This document shows, piece by piece, positions 49,668 through 58,423 of a stretch of DNA of 64,000 nt (positions are counted from its first letter, which is position 1; the number at the start of each line of letters is the position of its first letter). Made by a program: the position numbers and the translations under genes. This DNA is from Octopus bimaculoides (Eukaryota). The DNA is taken from contig NC_068998.1 of assembly GCF_001194135.2 (NCBI RefSeq), positions 50,972,717 to 51,036,716 on the forward strand, written 5' to 3'. The notes beneath the pieces were generated by a model. It had not been told where the DNA came from. It saw nothing but the letters and a program-made list of their open reading frames with translations, and ran no database searches.

Positions 49668-50942
49668 AATCAAATCTAGTTGTGTAATTCATGTATATAT
49701 TTCAGATTATATTCTACAATATATGCTGACAGGTAAACCATTTCCAGAAGATAAAGGTTAGTAAACTCTTTTTTACTTAGAAAATGATCATAATGTTGCT
49801 TTATGTTAGTTATTTTTAATATAGTTTGTGAGATGCACCTCTGTACGGTATTATTGCTCAAAGAGATAGCTTTCAAAACTGTTTCAGGATATTTCTTCAG
49901 AACAGTTGTCATAACTTCTCGAATGACTGGCGCGATCAAAGTTTTCTCAGTCGTATGAGTTTTGCCTGCCAACGTCACTGTTATGTGCCGCAGCAGCAAA
50001 CATGTCGTAAAGTTGTGTCCTTGCTACTTTTGTCAGGCAAATCTTTGAAATAGCTCATATGTTTATCGGCTTTATTGGGATGCAACATCTTGAAATGAAT
50101 ATTTTAATTTCGTGACCTCGGATGGATGGAAAGCAAATGCGACATTATCTGAATATGAACTTGGAATGTAAAGAGCGAGAAGAATTATCACAGAGCATTT
50201 TTTTTCTGTTGCTATCACAATTCTGTTAATCCAACAGTACGAAACTGACAATTTCCAGCTGATGTCGTGGATTCAGACCGGAATTAGTATAATTTATACT
50301 ATATTTCTTAATATTCATTCAGTCTGAAAGAATATTAAATAATAATTTTTAATTTACAGATTTTCCTGTCGTGGGCCATTGCTTGGATGAAACATATTGC
50401 CCAGAAGCTGAGAAAAAGTATCCTTCAGATTTTAACATCGAAAGTTTCTGCTTGTACATATCATTTTTATTCCCACTCTTATTTCTCATTTAAATAAGCA
50501 TTGCATCATAATCTCTTAAAAACTTATATTTCTTTATTGAGCAGACCGCTAAATGTTTGTCAGAGTGTGGGCGAATTTAAATATTACACACACGACCAGA
50601 TATCATAAAACAAAGAAATGCAAATTATACCACGAAAAGATTTGCCCACAAATATCAAACATATAACGCCATACATTTTAAAATGGTACACATTTTATCA
50701 ACTTCATTATGATTTCTTGTTTGTAGCAAAAAATAATACAAAATATTGCCAGATATATTCAGTATAATTTTTTAAAAATTATATCGAGCGAATTCTGTTT
50801 GTCTTGCAGACGTATATTAATGTATACAGATTGTGCCAGGAAGATTGAAGATCTGCAGTGCATTAAGGAGCTGAATGCTTATTACAAGTTCTTTGACTTC
50901 TGTCATTGTAAGAGATTTATGTTTCTTTGCAAAGTATGGTAA
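47263..50942 (+). CDS. Gene B: secreted cysteine-rich small protein, 99 aa, join(47263..47296,48103..48141,50360..50453,50810..50942)
   Basis: Spliced open frame: [99 protein letters not shown]. 8 mature Cys, TATA at 47193, ATTAAA at 51036. A gap in intron 2 (48504-49420) could hide sequence. Confidence 0.8.
48103..48141 (+). CDS. Gene B exon 2 (39 nt)
   Basis: Acceptor TACTTATTTTAG, donor A|GTAAGG. Confidence 0.75.
49820..50050 (-). mobile_element. hAT (Charlie/Buster-like) transposase relic in gene B intron 2
   Basis: [25 protein letters not shown]...[15 protein letters not shown] matches the KPHTIGExLIxP...IPLSNNTVxRRI motif. Confidence 0.75.
50360..50453 (+). CDS. Gene B exon 3 (94 nt)
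   Basis: Acceptor AATTTACAG, weak donor TT|GTACAT; encodes [16 protein letters not shown]...FC. Confidence 0.8.
50810..50942 (+). CDS. Gene B exon 4 (to TAA)
   Basis: Acceptor TTTGTCTTGCAG; 5 Cys including CHC. Confidence 0.75.
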
Positions 50943-51774
50943 GAAATCGTGAAGAAGAGAGCTTAATTAGTGACGCTAAATTAATGATGATGTAAATTCA
51001 ATTACCACAGATGTGAATTTTCCTTTTAGTTCATAATTAAACGGTTAAATATATTAGATTATTTTCTATATAATTAATACTTAAACGATGGAGTATCAAA
51101 GATCTGCTTAGTGTATCATGTTTTGCCTGTTGCTATTATTTCATATAAATTATATGGGTTAAATGTAGATACAAAGAAAGTTTGAGGTTGAAAAAAAACT
51201 TGAAGTACCATTATAGGAAAATTTATCAGATTTGCAGGAATGCATGGGAAAATAACTTCCATCAACCCCTAGAATCTTTGTGTTTTCATTTCACGCTAAA
51301 CAGCTCGGAAAGGTTTAATTCATTTCTGAAGTATCAATCTAAAATTAATTTCACATATCATATATTCATTCCAGTATAAAAAACAGAAGTTCATATGATG
51401 TTTCGCTTTATTCTACTACATTAAGCAGCATATTAGATATAAAATACTTATTTGCCTAATGGAAGAATTGAATATTAAATCAAAGTATATTTTGATGTAA
51501 GAATATTTATCAAAATACATTTGTATTTTATATTCGTACTTCATTATCACAACGTTTTCAGTTGAATATTATTAACACAGTCTAGACGTACTCTAGTCTA
51601 AATGACAGTTGACAGTTAGACTGGTTTAAGAAACATAATACCAACAGGATATTATTACTAAAATATCTGTAATGTAGCTTATTTCCACAAAATATGTCAT
51701 ATATACTCACTATTAAATGTAATGTAGTTTCTACACTCCTGGTGTAAAGCAGTGATGTATACATACATATGGCA

Positions 51775-51910
51775 ATACATACATACATACATACATACAT
51801 ACATACATACATACGTACATACATACATACACACATACATACGTACATACATACATACATACATACATACGTACATACATACATACATACATACATACAT
51901 ACATACCTTC

Positions 51911-52004
<94 letters not shown>
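51775..52004. repeat. Compound (CATA)n-(GAT)n-(AAT)n microsatellite
   Basis: Direct reading. Confidence 0.95.
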
Positions 52005-52861
52005 GTCAAAATTAAAAGAAGAGTGCCATTTGCTATCTCGTGAACAATATTTCGACATCTTGCGTGTCTTCCACTGGTTCAAAAAATAAATTTGTCAATC
52101 TNNNNNNNNNNNNNNNNNNNNNNNNNNNNNNNNNNNNNNNNNNNNNNNNNNNNNNNNNNNNNNNNNNNNNNNNNNNNNNNNNNNNNNNNNNNNNNNNNNN
52201 NNNNNNNNNNNNNNNNNNNNNNNNNNNNNNNNNNNNNNNNNNNNNNNNNNNNNNNNNNNNNNNNNNNNNNNNNNNNNNNNNNNNNNNNNNNNNNNNNNNN
52301 NNNNNNNNNNNNNNNNNNNNNNNNNNNNNNNNNNNNNNNNNNNNNNNNNNNNNNNNNNNNNNNNNNNNNNNNNNNNNNNNNNNNNNNNNNNNNNNNNNNN
52401 NNNNNNNNNNNNNNNNNNNNNNNNNNNNNNNNNNNNNNNNNNNNNNNNNNNNNNNNNNNNNNNNNNNNNNNNNNNNNNNNNNNNNNNNNNNNNNNNNNNN
52501 NNNNNNNNNNNNNNNNNNNNNNNNNNNNNNNNNNNNNNNNNNNNNNNNNNNNNNNNNNNNNNNNNNNNNNNNNNNNNNNNNNNNNNNNNNNNNNNNNGCC
52601 ATTTGCTATCTCGTGAACAATATTTCGACATCTTGCGTGTAATTTTAACTCTATATCTTCAGGAGGAGTTACCTCAATCCTTTCTATATAAACGAAAATG
52701 AAGTAGATTGATAAATTTATTTTTTGAACCAGTGGAAGACACGCAAGATGTCGAAATATTGTTCACGAGATAGCAAATGTCACTCTTCTTTTAATTTTGA
52801 CTCTATATCTTCAGGAGGAGTTACCTCAATCCTTTCTATATAAATAATAATAATAATAATA

Positions 52862-56290: not shown

Positions 56291-56338
56291 ATGTATATAT
56301 ATATATGTGTGTATGTATATATATATATNNNNNNNNNN

Positions 56339-56385
<47 letters not shown>

Positions 56386-56386
56386 G

Positions 56387-56430
<44 letters not shown>

Positions 56431-58423
56431 AGTGTGCATTAGTTTCTGCGCGTGTTTTTTTGTGTGCATGGTTACATGAATAAACACACGTATTCCAAAT
56501 CATTCAACCTTTATATTTAACGAAGTTTTTGCAGAATGAATTCTTGCTGGGCTGTTTAGGTCACTGCTTTAATTTAATACTGTTTCAATCTCCTTCACCG
56601 AGTTTTTACCGTTCGGCTGTTACCCACCGATATCAATGAAATAATTATTCACGTTTGCTTATATATCGCGAAAAGAAATTCGTTCAAGAAGGTTGCACGT
56701 TCATGACAGGCCCAGTTAAGGGCGAAATATATCTAATATTGCCATGACTTACTGCTGTGATGACGCTCTTTTATCTGAGATATAAATTGTCTTTTAAATA
56801 CAACATTATTATGAAGAATGTTTTACTGATCCAATTGTACAGATTCATGTCTTCAAACGATGTGTATGAATTGTATAAATTTTGTATGATACACATATCT
56901 CGAGTTTCAAATTAAATTTTCATTATTTTAAACCGTTACTATATTTCTCAATCATTTTCATCATTCCGTGTTTATATTCTTCTAGTTATTTCAGTGATTG
57001 TTCTGCAGAAATGCTGGGGACACAGACCAGTTTGTAAGTAGATCATAACTACGTTCATCTGGATTATTCCAAGCATTACCAATGTGTGTTGGGGCTGAAT
57101 TAGTTTCACAGCTACATCTGAGAGCTTGAAAGAGACGTAAATGTGATGGCGTTTAAGTATGTTCTTATTCGAATATTCTGTGACGTGCGATGCACATCAT
57201 ACACTAATAGTTTTACAATATCGAGTCTGTGTTATTTATCATAACTCATTTTGGAATTTATAGTTGTAACAAACGGGGAGATACTTTCCACCAGACGTTT
57301 ACGTGTTTTAAGATAAACAATATATCAACAGACGTTTGTAAATTGTTAATACATATCAATAGTGAATAAATTAGAAGATTTTCAGTTGTGTATTACAGTC
57401 ATAATTGTAATGAGGCACCATTTTATGATTTCTGCGACATGAACGTAAAATGATTGTTAACATAAGAGTAATTTAGTAATATCAAAATATCCCTCTATTT
57501 GTAGACGCACCTAATTTGATAATATTAAAACACGGCACGATCATCTCATTTGTAAGACACGATTCTAATTTAGGTCGAAGAATATTAGTTTTGATGGGAA
57601 GGGGGTACACGGTACTATTCACCCCAATACCTGAGGAATATTTTAATTTCGAGACTTCGGATGGATGGAAAGCAAATGCATCATTACCAGAATGTGAACT
57701 TGGAACGTAAAGAGCGAGAAGAACTATCACAAGGTATTTTTTTCTGTTGCTATCACAATTCTGTTAATTCGACAGCACGAAATTGATAATGACACTGACA
57801 ATTTCCAGCTGATATCGCGGATTCAGACTGGAATTAGTGTAATTTATACTATATTTCTTAATATTTATTCTGTCTGGAAAGAATATTAAATAATACATTT
57901 TAATATGCAGATCGTCCTGATGTGGGCCATTGCTTTGATGAAGCGTATTGCCCAGGAGCCGAGAAAAAGTATCATTTTGATTATTACAGGGAAATTTTCT
58001 GCTCGTACGTATCCTTTTATTCTAACTATTAGTATTATTTCTCATTTAATATTAATTTAATATTTTCTAAATAAGCAAGTGCGCAATAAACTCTTTAAAA
58101 CTAATATTTCTTTATTGAGCACGCTGCTATAAGTTGTTGGTCAGATTGTAAGTGAATTTAAACATTAAACACACGATCAAATATCATAAAGCAAATTATG
58201 CCACGAAAAGATTTGCCCACAAACATCAAACATATAACGCCATACATTTTATGAACTAATTATATTGACCGAATTCTGTTTGTCTTGCAGACATATACTA
58301 AAGTATAAAGATTGTGCTAAGAAGAACAAAGATCAGCTGTGTATTGAGGTGCTGGATTCCTATTTCAAGTCGGTTTACTTCTGTCCTTGTATGAGATTTT
58401 TGTTTCTTTGCAACATACAATGA
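54903..58423 (+). CDS. Gene C: secreted cysteine-rich small protein, 99 aa, join(54903..54936,56995..57033,57911..58004,58291..58423)
   Basis: Spliced open frame: MKYSLYFLLIIVIVLQKCWG-HRPVYRPDVGHCFDEAYCPGAEKKYHFDYYREIFCSHILKYKDCAKKNKDQLCIEVLDSYFKSVYFCPCMRFLFLCNIQ*. Best-formed signal peptide of the three, 8 mature Cys, TATA at 54834, ATTAAA at 58515. No gaps in introns 2-3, so this copy defines the exon structure. Confidence 0.85.
55295..55530 (+). mobile_element. PLE GIY-YIG endonuclease relic, C-terminal half, in gene C intron 1
   Basis: TKLASHV*xLK...IKWRIIEKSMPYVNGSK*CNFCVAE...LLNSRYEISSKCK matches LSKHIWxLK...IKWxI...CNLCLxE...LLNKRxELxSKCRH. Confidence 0.8.
56995..57033 (+). CDS. Gene C exon 2 (39 nt, VIVLQKCWGHRPV)
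   Basis: Acceptor TAGTTATTTCAG, donor T|GTAAGT. Confidence 0.8.
57911..58004 (+). CDS. Gene C exon 3 (94 nt)
   Basis: Acceptor AATATGCAG, donor TC|GTACGT. Confidence 0.85.
58291..58423 (+). CDS. Gene C exon 4 (to TGA)
   Basis: Acceptor TTTGTCTTGCAG; 5 Cys including CPC. Confidence 0.8.

Follow-up and report, generated by a model that had tools for sequence, protein, structure and literature searches.

Tandem paralogues in which the exons for the mature protein are more divergent than the introns are known classically from the snake-venom PLA2 genes and from the mammalian beta-defensins. In those cases, ratios of non-synonymous to synonymous divergence (dN/dS, or omega) above 1 were obtained from many genes, and gene conversion was explicitly examined. 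Here we describe two neighbouring genes, B and C, for which the comparison, unlike those, is one of two sequences. They belong to a tandem cluster on chromosome CM046618.1 of Octopus bimaculoides (GCA_001194135.2), in a stretch of 64,000 nucleotides (nt; ~50.97–51.04 Mb) that we term ‘the window’, and within which all positions are numbered from the first letter. An initial annotation of this DNA held that the coding exons of B and C diverge faster than their introns, almost all non-synonymously, and that this reflects diversifying selection on target-binding surfaces, a pattern that marks toxins and host-defence peptides. The reading that we consider probable is another one: B and C are a fast-evolving pair in which the cysteine (Cys) scaffold alone is constrained, and the mosaic history of the non-coding DNA produces much of the contrast between exons and introns.

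Two molluscan systems come closest. In the conotoxin genes of Conus, introns and the signal sequence are conserved within a superfamily, and Dn and Ds are both highest in the exon for the mature peptide (PMC3862624). B and C resemble the conotoxin superfamilies in being Cys-rich precursors of the secreted type with a phase-1 intron after the signal-peptide exon (PMC3862624), and in that dN and dS of exons 3–4 both exceed the divergence of the flanking non-coding DNA. They differ from conotoxins in several respects: there is no relation of sequence or fold; the mature protein is larger (~75–85 aa), spread over two to three exons, and predicted to be helical; omega lies near 1, not clearly above it; and the octopus pair is known here from genes alone. 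The MgCRP-I peptides of Mytilus galloprovincialis are likewise short, secreted, Cys-rich and restricted to their taxon, and expanded in tandem (PMC4558851). As in B and C, the genes have four exons, with a phase-1 intron following the one for the signal; the pre-pro region is conserved, and the mature region varies around invariant Cys residues. The Cys pattern is different, however, the sequences are unrelated, and the Cys domain of MgCRP-I lies entirely in one exon. For MgCRP-I, positive selection was found by site models applied to many loci, whereas the octopus genes provide one close pair; and the function of MgCRP-I stayed obscure even after assays (PMC4558851). The nearest relatives of all are the octopus paralogues A, D, E and F, which have the same framework, exon phases and promoter motif as B and C, but six Cys residues instead of eight.

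Divergence of exons and of the DNA around them

The exons that matter most here are the third and fourth, all on the + strand. In B, exon 3 (50360–50453, 94 nt) encodes Cys 1–3, and exon 4 (50810–50942, 133 nt, with a TAA at 50940 as initially annotated) encodes Cys 4–8. Their counterparts in C are exon 3 (57911–58004, 94 nt) and exon 4 (58291–58423, 133 nt), which ends in the stop codon TGA at 58421–58423. B and C were compared by MAFFT and by global alignment; because this is a single close pair, power is low. The counts in the initial annotation were reproduced exactly. With MAFFT, exon 3 differs at 18/94 positions and exon 4 at 31/133. Exon 2 (39 nt in the version common to both genes; 48103–48141 in B, 56995–57033 in C, both +) is about half divergent, at 21 of 39 positions. 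Across exons 3–4, 34 of the 74 whole codons encode a different residue and four differ purely silently, while all eight Cys residues are kept and there is neither stop nor frameshift. The two stretches that had served as the non-coding baseline gave 4/105 for the 3′ flank at 51083–51187, and 4/76 plus one gap column for the start of intron 1.

These two baseline stretches, as it happens, are the least diverged of the non-coding pieces. The whole 3′ flank differs at 24/245 positions (9.8%), the 3′ end of intron 2 at 25/262 (9.5%), intron 3 at 37/256 (14.5%, with 130 further gap columns) and the 3′ end of intron 1 at 83/535 (15.5%); at the start of intron 2, homology between B and C is undetectable and no alignment is possible. 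All alignable non-coding DNA taken together differs at 13.7% of positions (240/1757); if the 5′ flank, which is riddled with microsatellites, is set aside, the figure is 12.2% (189/1544). Exons 3 and 4 together, at 21.6%, exceed the pooled 13.7% (Fisher p=0.0026), and so the claim that exons diverge faster than introns holds in direction, but the factor is 1.4–1.8 rather than ~5. In windows of 60 columns, the exons show 11–13 differences, the first 120 nt of intron 3 show 14 and 11, and intron 1 shows 7–11. The contrast between exons and non-coding DNA is genuine, then, but it has no sharp boundary at the exons. Apart from these substitutions, intron 1 of C contains ~1.26 kb (55086–56346), with microsatellites at both ends, that is missing from B, where the flanks sit ~10 nt apart.

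The non-coding segments also differ among themselves (chi-square p=0.003). If we include a 295-bp block around the fifth exon of B, heterogeneity rises to p=1e-10, and divergence ranges from 1.0% (3/295) to 15.5%. This block, at 53527–53821 (+), is 99% identical to 58793–59087 (+) downstream of C, and 75% identical to a copy in A (44555–44808). It holds exon 5 of the NCBI models of B (53608–53641, +), which reads SYSCQFRSCE followed by a stop, and the copy downstream of C contains the same SYSCQFRSCE reading at 58875–58904. Only three differences separate the B and C copies, against 10–20% divergence elsewhere in the unit, which points to recent gene conversion or recent local duplication of the block. 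A resemblance between the start of this block and the cassette exon 2b of B was considered and rejected as a chance match of seven residues.

With A as the outgroup, non-coding changes are divided evenly, 53 in B only and 53 in C only. Ratios of the B–C distance to the distance from A are lowest, at 0.18–0.23, in three places: the 3′ flank, the 5′ end of intron 1 and the 3′ end of intron 2. The 3′ end of intron 1 gives 0.42 and intron 3 gives 0.51; those of exon 3 and exon 4 are 0.34 and 0.43. On this rough measure, the age of the exons does not exceed that of the older introns, and it is younger non-coding tracts that create the contrast. One tract is, in addition, not neutral. A conserved non-coding element, CGATGGAGTAT..ATCTG.TTAGTGTAT, occupies 51086–51116 (+) in B and 58569–58599 in C, and occurs also in A and E. 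Since this element of ~31 nt, conserved in four genes, lies at the start of the 3′ stretch used as the baseline, that stretch is not a neutral yardstick. Gene conversion together with local constraint is the simplest reading of the mosaic. The element, in the form CGATGGAGTAT..ATCTG.TTTAGTGTAT, is found 3′ of exon 4 at ~43150–43185 in A and at ~12615–12650 in the locus of E (L002), despite the fact that A, B, C and E are otherwise ~62% alike in their non-coding DNA.

Could the assembler have made the pattern, through mis-joined contigs or by presenting two alleles as B and C, so that the identical stretches are artificial? There are 19 N gaps in the window, sequence is duplicated across two of those between B and C, and the 295-bp block is 99% identical. 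The first of the two gaps, at 52102–52597 in the B–C spacer (within intron 4 of the NCBI model of B), has 43 nt duplicated exactly on either side and sits within an inverted repeat of 98 nt (52004–52101 and 52705–52802; 98% complementary), which may be a fold-back or MITE-like (miniature inverted-repeat transposable) element that broke the assembly. The second, a gap of 10 N at 54053–54062 in the same spacer, is flanked by 56 nt duplicated exactly, which suggests an unmerged overlap. Another 10-N gap lies in intron 1 of C (56329–56338), inside a (TA)n microsatellite; intron 1 of B, free of gaps, aligns in the same order to either side of it. A further gap, 48504–49420, splits exons 1–2 of B from exons 2b–4, and is spanned by the NCBI transcript model. 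None of these gaps touches an exon or reading frame of the regions compared. Exons 3–4 of B are within the contig 49421–52101, exons 2–4 of C within the contig 56339–64000, and the exons and flanks on which our comparison depends are thus inside gap-free contigs. The three differences within the 295-bp block show that it was not copied and pasted. We rejected an allelic relationship between B and C: divergence is 10–20%, indels are many, intron lengths differ, and part of intron 2 is non-homologous. We regard an assembly artefact as scarcely credible.

Codon-level tests and the cysteine scaffold

The description of the changes as almost all non-synonymous does not distinguish them from chance. 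When 48 substitutions are placed at random, in either sequence, 32.1 codons are replaced and 6.4 are silent on average, compared with the 34 and four observed (p=0.29 and p=0.21, respectively). For exons 3–4 of B and C, dN/dS is 0.81 by NG86 (bootstrap 95% confidence interval, CI, 0.44–1.67) and 0.91 by LWL85. Pairwise maximum likelihood under GY94, in our own implementation, gives omega of 1.06–1.12 (profile interval ~0.45–2.8), which a likelihood-ratio test does not separate from 1 (2ΔlnL 0.02–0.06, p=0.8–0.9). Omega values of 0.3 or less are rejected for this pair (2ΔlnL 8.4–9.8). The A/D/E pairs, for comparison, have omega of 0.22–0.32 with saturated dS; family-wide dN/dS is unreliable because of this saturation (dS ~0.7–1.7). 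The mature region of B and C evolves much faster than that of the sister paralogues. The test proposed with the initial annotation, dN/dS set against an intron baseline, was thus run on the B–C pair, and its outcome bears against diversifying selection in part: omega is not above 1, and the non-coding identity is mosaic, with a conserved element in one of the baseline stretches.

Between B and C, dS is 0.30 (CI 0.14–0.54), dN 0.243 and non-coding divergence (Knc) 0.134, so that dS/Knc is 2.2 (CI 1.05–4.2). As dS is raised over the non-coding level as much as dN, the excess in the exons is not specifically one of amino-acid changes. Leaving out the Cys codons brings the two together, with dN 0.285 and dS 0.289. 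A joint rise of this kind is what a mutational process targeted to the exons for the mature peptide would produce, by raising synonymous and non-synonymous change alike; hypermutation of such exons has been suggested for conopeptides. Besides dS/Knc of 2.2 alongside dN/Knc of 1.8, transversions are more frequent in the exons (11.0%) than in the non-coding DNA (5.0%). The transition:transversion contrast is not significant, however (p=0.20), and dS rests on ~50 sites; third codon positions, at 13/75, are near the non-coding level, and intron 3 matches the exons in divergence over its first 120 nt. We think exon-targeted mutation very unlikely.

If B and C encoded a binding peptide (say, a toxin, pheromone or defence peptide) whose exposed loops were under diversifying selection, the excess in the exons would be adaptive. 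We hold this possible, but doubtful. The excess itself (21.6% versus 13.7%) is as expected, the Cys scaffold is kept, and omega is well above that of the A/D/E pairs. The layout, with a signal peptide, small and variable cassette exons, and an optional exon in A that encodes RKRR, is also in keeping with it, and conotoxin genes (PMC3862624) and MgCRP-I (PMC4558851) present a like pattern. On the other side, omega does not exceed 1, dS shows as large a rise as dN, and codons are replaced as often as chance predicts. On the A-scaled measure, exon divergence does not surpass that of intron 3, and nothing in homology, fold or expression links the family to toxins or defence.

The framework of the protein, as opposed to the rest of it, is clearly held in place. 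In simulations with neutral placement of the changes, all eight Cys residues survive in 0.6% of cases (p=0.006) and the frame stays open in 13%; both together occur in ~0.1% (p about 0.001). Since this retention is non-random, the Cys scaffold and the reading frame are under purifying selection. Among the non-Cys residues of B and C, in comparison, 46% are replaced. Change has not fallen evenly on the two genes. Polarised with A, D, E and F, 11 replacements are derived in C and three in B, with 15 ambiguous (p=0.057), and nucleotide changes in exons 3–4 number 14 in C only versus six in B only. C has altered residues that are otherwise invariant: the E of CPEA, the P of KYP and the R of FCxRL. 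This asymmetry fits either relaxed constraint on C or a functional shift in C.

If C were a decaying, non-functional copy, its high rate of replacement would follow from lost constraint. C has no NCBI model, unlike A, B and E; 11 of the 14 polarised replacements lie on its side, several at residues invariant in the family; omega is ~1; and two splice sites used in B are lost. The downstream donor of exon 4 is replaced in C by a sequence with no GT (ACAATGAGAA; 50936–50945 in B versus 58417–58426 in C), so that exon 4 of C must end at its TGA, and the upstream acceptor of exon 2 that the NCBI models of B use is also lacking. Decay would nonetheless have to accommodate the eight Cys residues and the open frame (the joint p about 0.001 given above), and an open frame of 99 codons with no stop, frameshift or broken splice site, GT–AG being retained at all three introns. 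The TATA box and 5′ region of C are ~90% identical to those of B, and the equal non-coding counts, 53 and 53, speak against any general excess of rate in C. Decay of C seems to us unlikely.

The difference between six and eight Cys residues can be traced to a splice site. In A, D, E and F, a donor (TGT nnn n/GTAAGA) closes exon 4 right after the sixth Cys; the homologue of this ancestral donor, GTAAGA in B and GTATGA in C, is read through. The last 35 nt of exon 4 in B and C (50908–50942 and 58389–58423) can be aligned with the beginning of intron 4 of the four six-Cys genes (e.g. 42961–42998 in A, and 12482–12520 at the E locus, L002), and they encode x-C-K/M-R-F-M/L-F-L-C, which contains Cys 7 and Cys 8. 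Because these 35 nt are intronic in the sister genes, the eight-Cys subtype would have been created by a shift of splice site, with the read-through in B resting on the NCBI model. Two of the eight Cys residues that B and C keep thus lie in sequence that is intronic elsewhere in the family. A bolder proposal is that the B/C sub-lineage, having gained two Cys residues and potentially a fourth disulfide in this way, is now diversifying under positive selection on its loops, as would be expected of a venom, defence or chemical-signalling repertoire; we offer it tentatively, and judge it rather improbable as a whole.

Returning to the reading that we favour, B and C would be tandem paralogues in an octopus-restricted family of small, secreted, disulfide-rich and mainly helical proteins. 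After the duplication, their mature-protein exons would have changed at about the unconstrained rate, with omega about 1, while purifying selection maintained no more than the open frame, the splice sites and the Cys framework. The C lineage would have taken most of the replacements for which a direction can be assigned, including those at residues invariant in the other five members. Some of the non-coding DNA would be as old as the exons (intron 3 and the 3′ end of intron 1); some would be younger or homogenised (the 3′ flank, the 3′ end of intron 2 and the 99%-identical exon-5 block, most simply by gene conversion); and some would be constrained (the promoter, the 5′ untranslated region, or UTR, and the conserved intronic element). 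Such a mixture, combined with generally fast evolution of the exons, would give the appearance that exons diverge faster than introns. The counts, an omega of about 1, the constraint on the scaffold and the mosaic divergence of the non-coding DNA are observed directly; some of the changes in the loops may be adaptive.

Several points weigh against this reading. Against pooled non-coding DNA, dN/Knc is 1.8 (1.82; 95% CI 1.30–2.48), although the ratio is only ~1.4 against the older non-coding segments (15.2%), and the non-coding baseline as a whole is heterogeneous and partly constrained. Second codon positions hold most of the differences, 13, 23 and 13 of the 49 falling on first, second and third positions (chi-square p=0.13). 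The excess of dN and that of second positions (23/49), both of which favour diversifying selection, could together signify positive selection at some sites, masked by an average omega of 1. A single pair of sequences affords low power. The outgroup-scaled ratios are rough, A aligning weakly in places with the introns, notably at the 3′ end of intron 2, and the case for gene conversion is drawn from heterogeneous divergence only.

Gene models, family and surroundings

By search with translated exon peptides (tblastn), the window holds a cluster of four family genes, A, B and C on the + strand and D on the − strand, all small and of four to five exons. NCBI annotates A (LOC128249908) and B (LOC128249863) as ‘uncharacterized’, and gives no gene model for C or D. 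The NCBI genomic locus retrieved for one of these two proteins agrees with 37203–63641 of the window at every base, Ns included. The coding part of exon 1 is at 47263–47296 (+) in B, with 11 residues and a phase-1 donor, GTAAGT, and at 54903–54936 (+) in the unannotated C, where it encodes MKYSLYFLLII. The four-exon models of both genes have GT–AG at every junction, and each yields an open frame of 99 codons; the exons of B match the NCBI protein at 97–100%. The NCBI isoforms of B depart from this simple model in three ways. The acceptor of exon 2 is at 48070, 33 nt upstream of the one initially annotated; a cassette exon, 2b, of 16 residues (49706–49756, +) is included; and exon 4 is spliced after 50937 (TATG/GTAAGA) into the fifth exon. 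Since the model splices there, the TAA ‘stop’ at 50940 lies within the donor of B. No counterpart of exon 2b was located in C, whose exon 2 has an alternative in-frame acceptor at 56986.

Upstream of exon 1, a TATA box, TATAAAAG, can be read at 47193–47200 (+) in B and at 54834–54841 in C. It is preceded in both by a conserved motif, AACAGCTGTTACAT, which is present upstream of A and, in a diverged form, upstream of E. This motif contains an E-box and, together with the TATA-like box, lies ~60–95 nt 5′ of the MKY start codon in A, B and C, and in diverged form in E; the two span 47169–47200 in B, 54810–54841 in C, 38290–38320 in A and ~9900–9945 at the E locus (L002). The NCBI model of B starts at an upstream in-frame ATG (47203), 3 nt past the TATA box, that is out of frame in C.

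Gene A, the outgroup used above, is of the six-Cys type and spans 38381–43454 (+), with exons at 38381–38417, 39453–39491, 42073–42175, 42863–42960 and ~43424–43454. In isoform X1, an optional exon of 21 nt (~40177–40197) encodes LNRKRRE, a basic run of the proprotein-convertase type, and this suggests a pro-peptide upstream of the Cys domain. Gene D, unannotated and also of the six-Cys type, occupies 60728–63705 on the − strand, tail to tail with C, with exons at 63705–63661, 62496–62467, 61997–61904 and 60825–60728; the second of these, of 30 nt, is an additional exon, and exon 1 of D was not located within the window. Two further members lie together 77 kb beyond the window: E (LOC128249871), the third annotated O. 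bimaculoides paralogue, and F, which is unannotated (~17200–22900 in L002). C, D and F share the property that NCBI has no models for them, yet their exon frames are intact.

The relationships of the family were sought in two ways. A profile built from A–D matched the NCBI proteins of A (E-value 4e-37) and B (4e-12). HMMER was then run exhaustively, with NCBI proteins of the family, over 1.84 billion representative proteins; besides A and B, this found only E (1e-22; ‘uncharacterized’) and one protein model from O. vulgaris (4e-8). A single-protein search with C found no match. The O. vulgaris model, CAI9735818.1, is 282 aa long and spans 141 kb; it joins to unrelated sequence an A-like exon 1 and an A-like exon 3, with 29 of 34 residues identical to A, and is probably a chimera predicted from several parts of the orthologous cluster. 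No Pfam family scored above the cut-off, a sequence search of the Protein Data Bank (PDB) returned no match, and Foldseek of the B model against the PDB gave none either (best E 8). The AlphaFold2 model, made from the NCBI protein of B, is helical, with predicted local distance difference test (pLDDT) scores of 78–92 over the Cys domain and 66 on average. Searches of the literature by locus name found no paper, and a general search for octopus and cysteine-rich proteins found nothing specific.

All members share the framework C-x5-CPEA-x-KKYP ... FC-x-RL-x-x-Y-x-x-C ... C ... C, and a common architecture: a signal exon, a phase-1 intron, an exon 2 of 39 nt, an exon 3 of 94 or 103 nt and a core of 98 nt in exon 4. 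A, B, C and E have a hydrophobic N-terminus that is conserved among them, and it is this, with a signal peptide judged by eye, that leads us to infer secretion; the signal would be cleaved after the CWG/S motif of exon 2. The family is a new one, restricted to octopus: small, Cys-rich, predicted to be secreted and mainly helical, with no relative in Pfam, in the PDB or outside octopus in these searches. The initial picture of a Cys-rich peptide under selection thus stands as regards the secreted-type precursor, the kept Cys residues and the variable loops, and falls short as regards omega above 1. The label of toxin or host-defence peptide has no support from homology, fold or expression, the searches of Pfam and the PDB, with Foldseek, being negative.

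The surrounding DNA is AT-rich with abundant microsatellites, and its long open reading frames (ORFs) are mostly translations of microsatellites, plus one fragment of reverse transcriptase. A dispersed repeat of ~180–230 bp, resembling a short interspersed nuclear element (SINE), occurs in both orientations. One copy is in intron 3 of A (42214–42394) and another lies 3′ of A (43829–44055); the others are at 5511–5760, 12287–12501, 27051–27257, 31156–31389 and 46236–46506. Retroelement fragments of the reverse-transcriptase type occur at 7939–8325 (−) and 54063–54360 (+), with a ...GPLLFII... ORF, and have left a decayed tail in the B–C spacer.

What the cluster means for octopus gene families

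Cephalopod genomes are rich in lineage-restricted genes that have no assigned role. This cluster is a compact and tractable case of such genes, with a clear Cys scaffold, a promoter motif that is conserved and six or more members in tandem, and within it B and C are a young pair that has escaped from the purifying selection seen in the sisters. It carries a lesson of method, too: the introns of tandem paralogues are unsafe as a neutral yardstick, since their divergence is reduced by conversion and by constrained elements hidden within them. If orthologues were to show adaptive change, the family would become a candidate for an octopus-specific secreted effector, acting, for example, in saliva or venom, in mucosal defence or in chemical signalling. 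The read-through of a donor that added two Cys residues would then be a clean instance of new structure arising from intron sequence.

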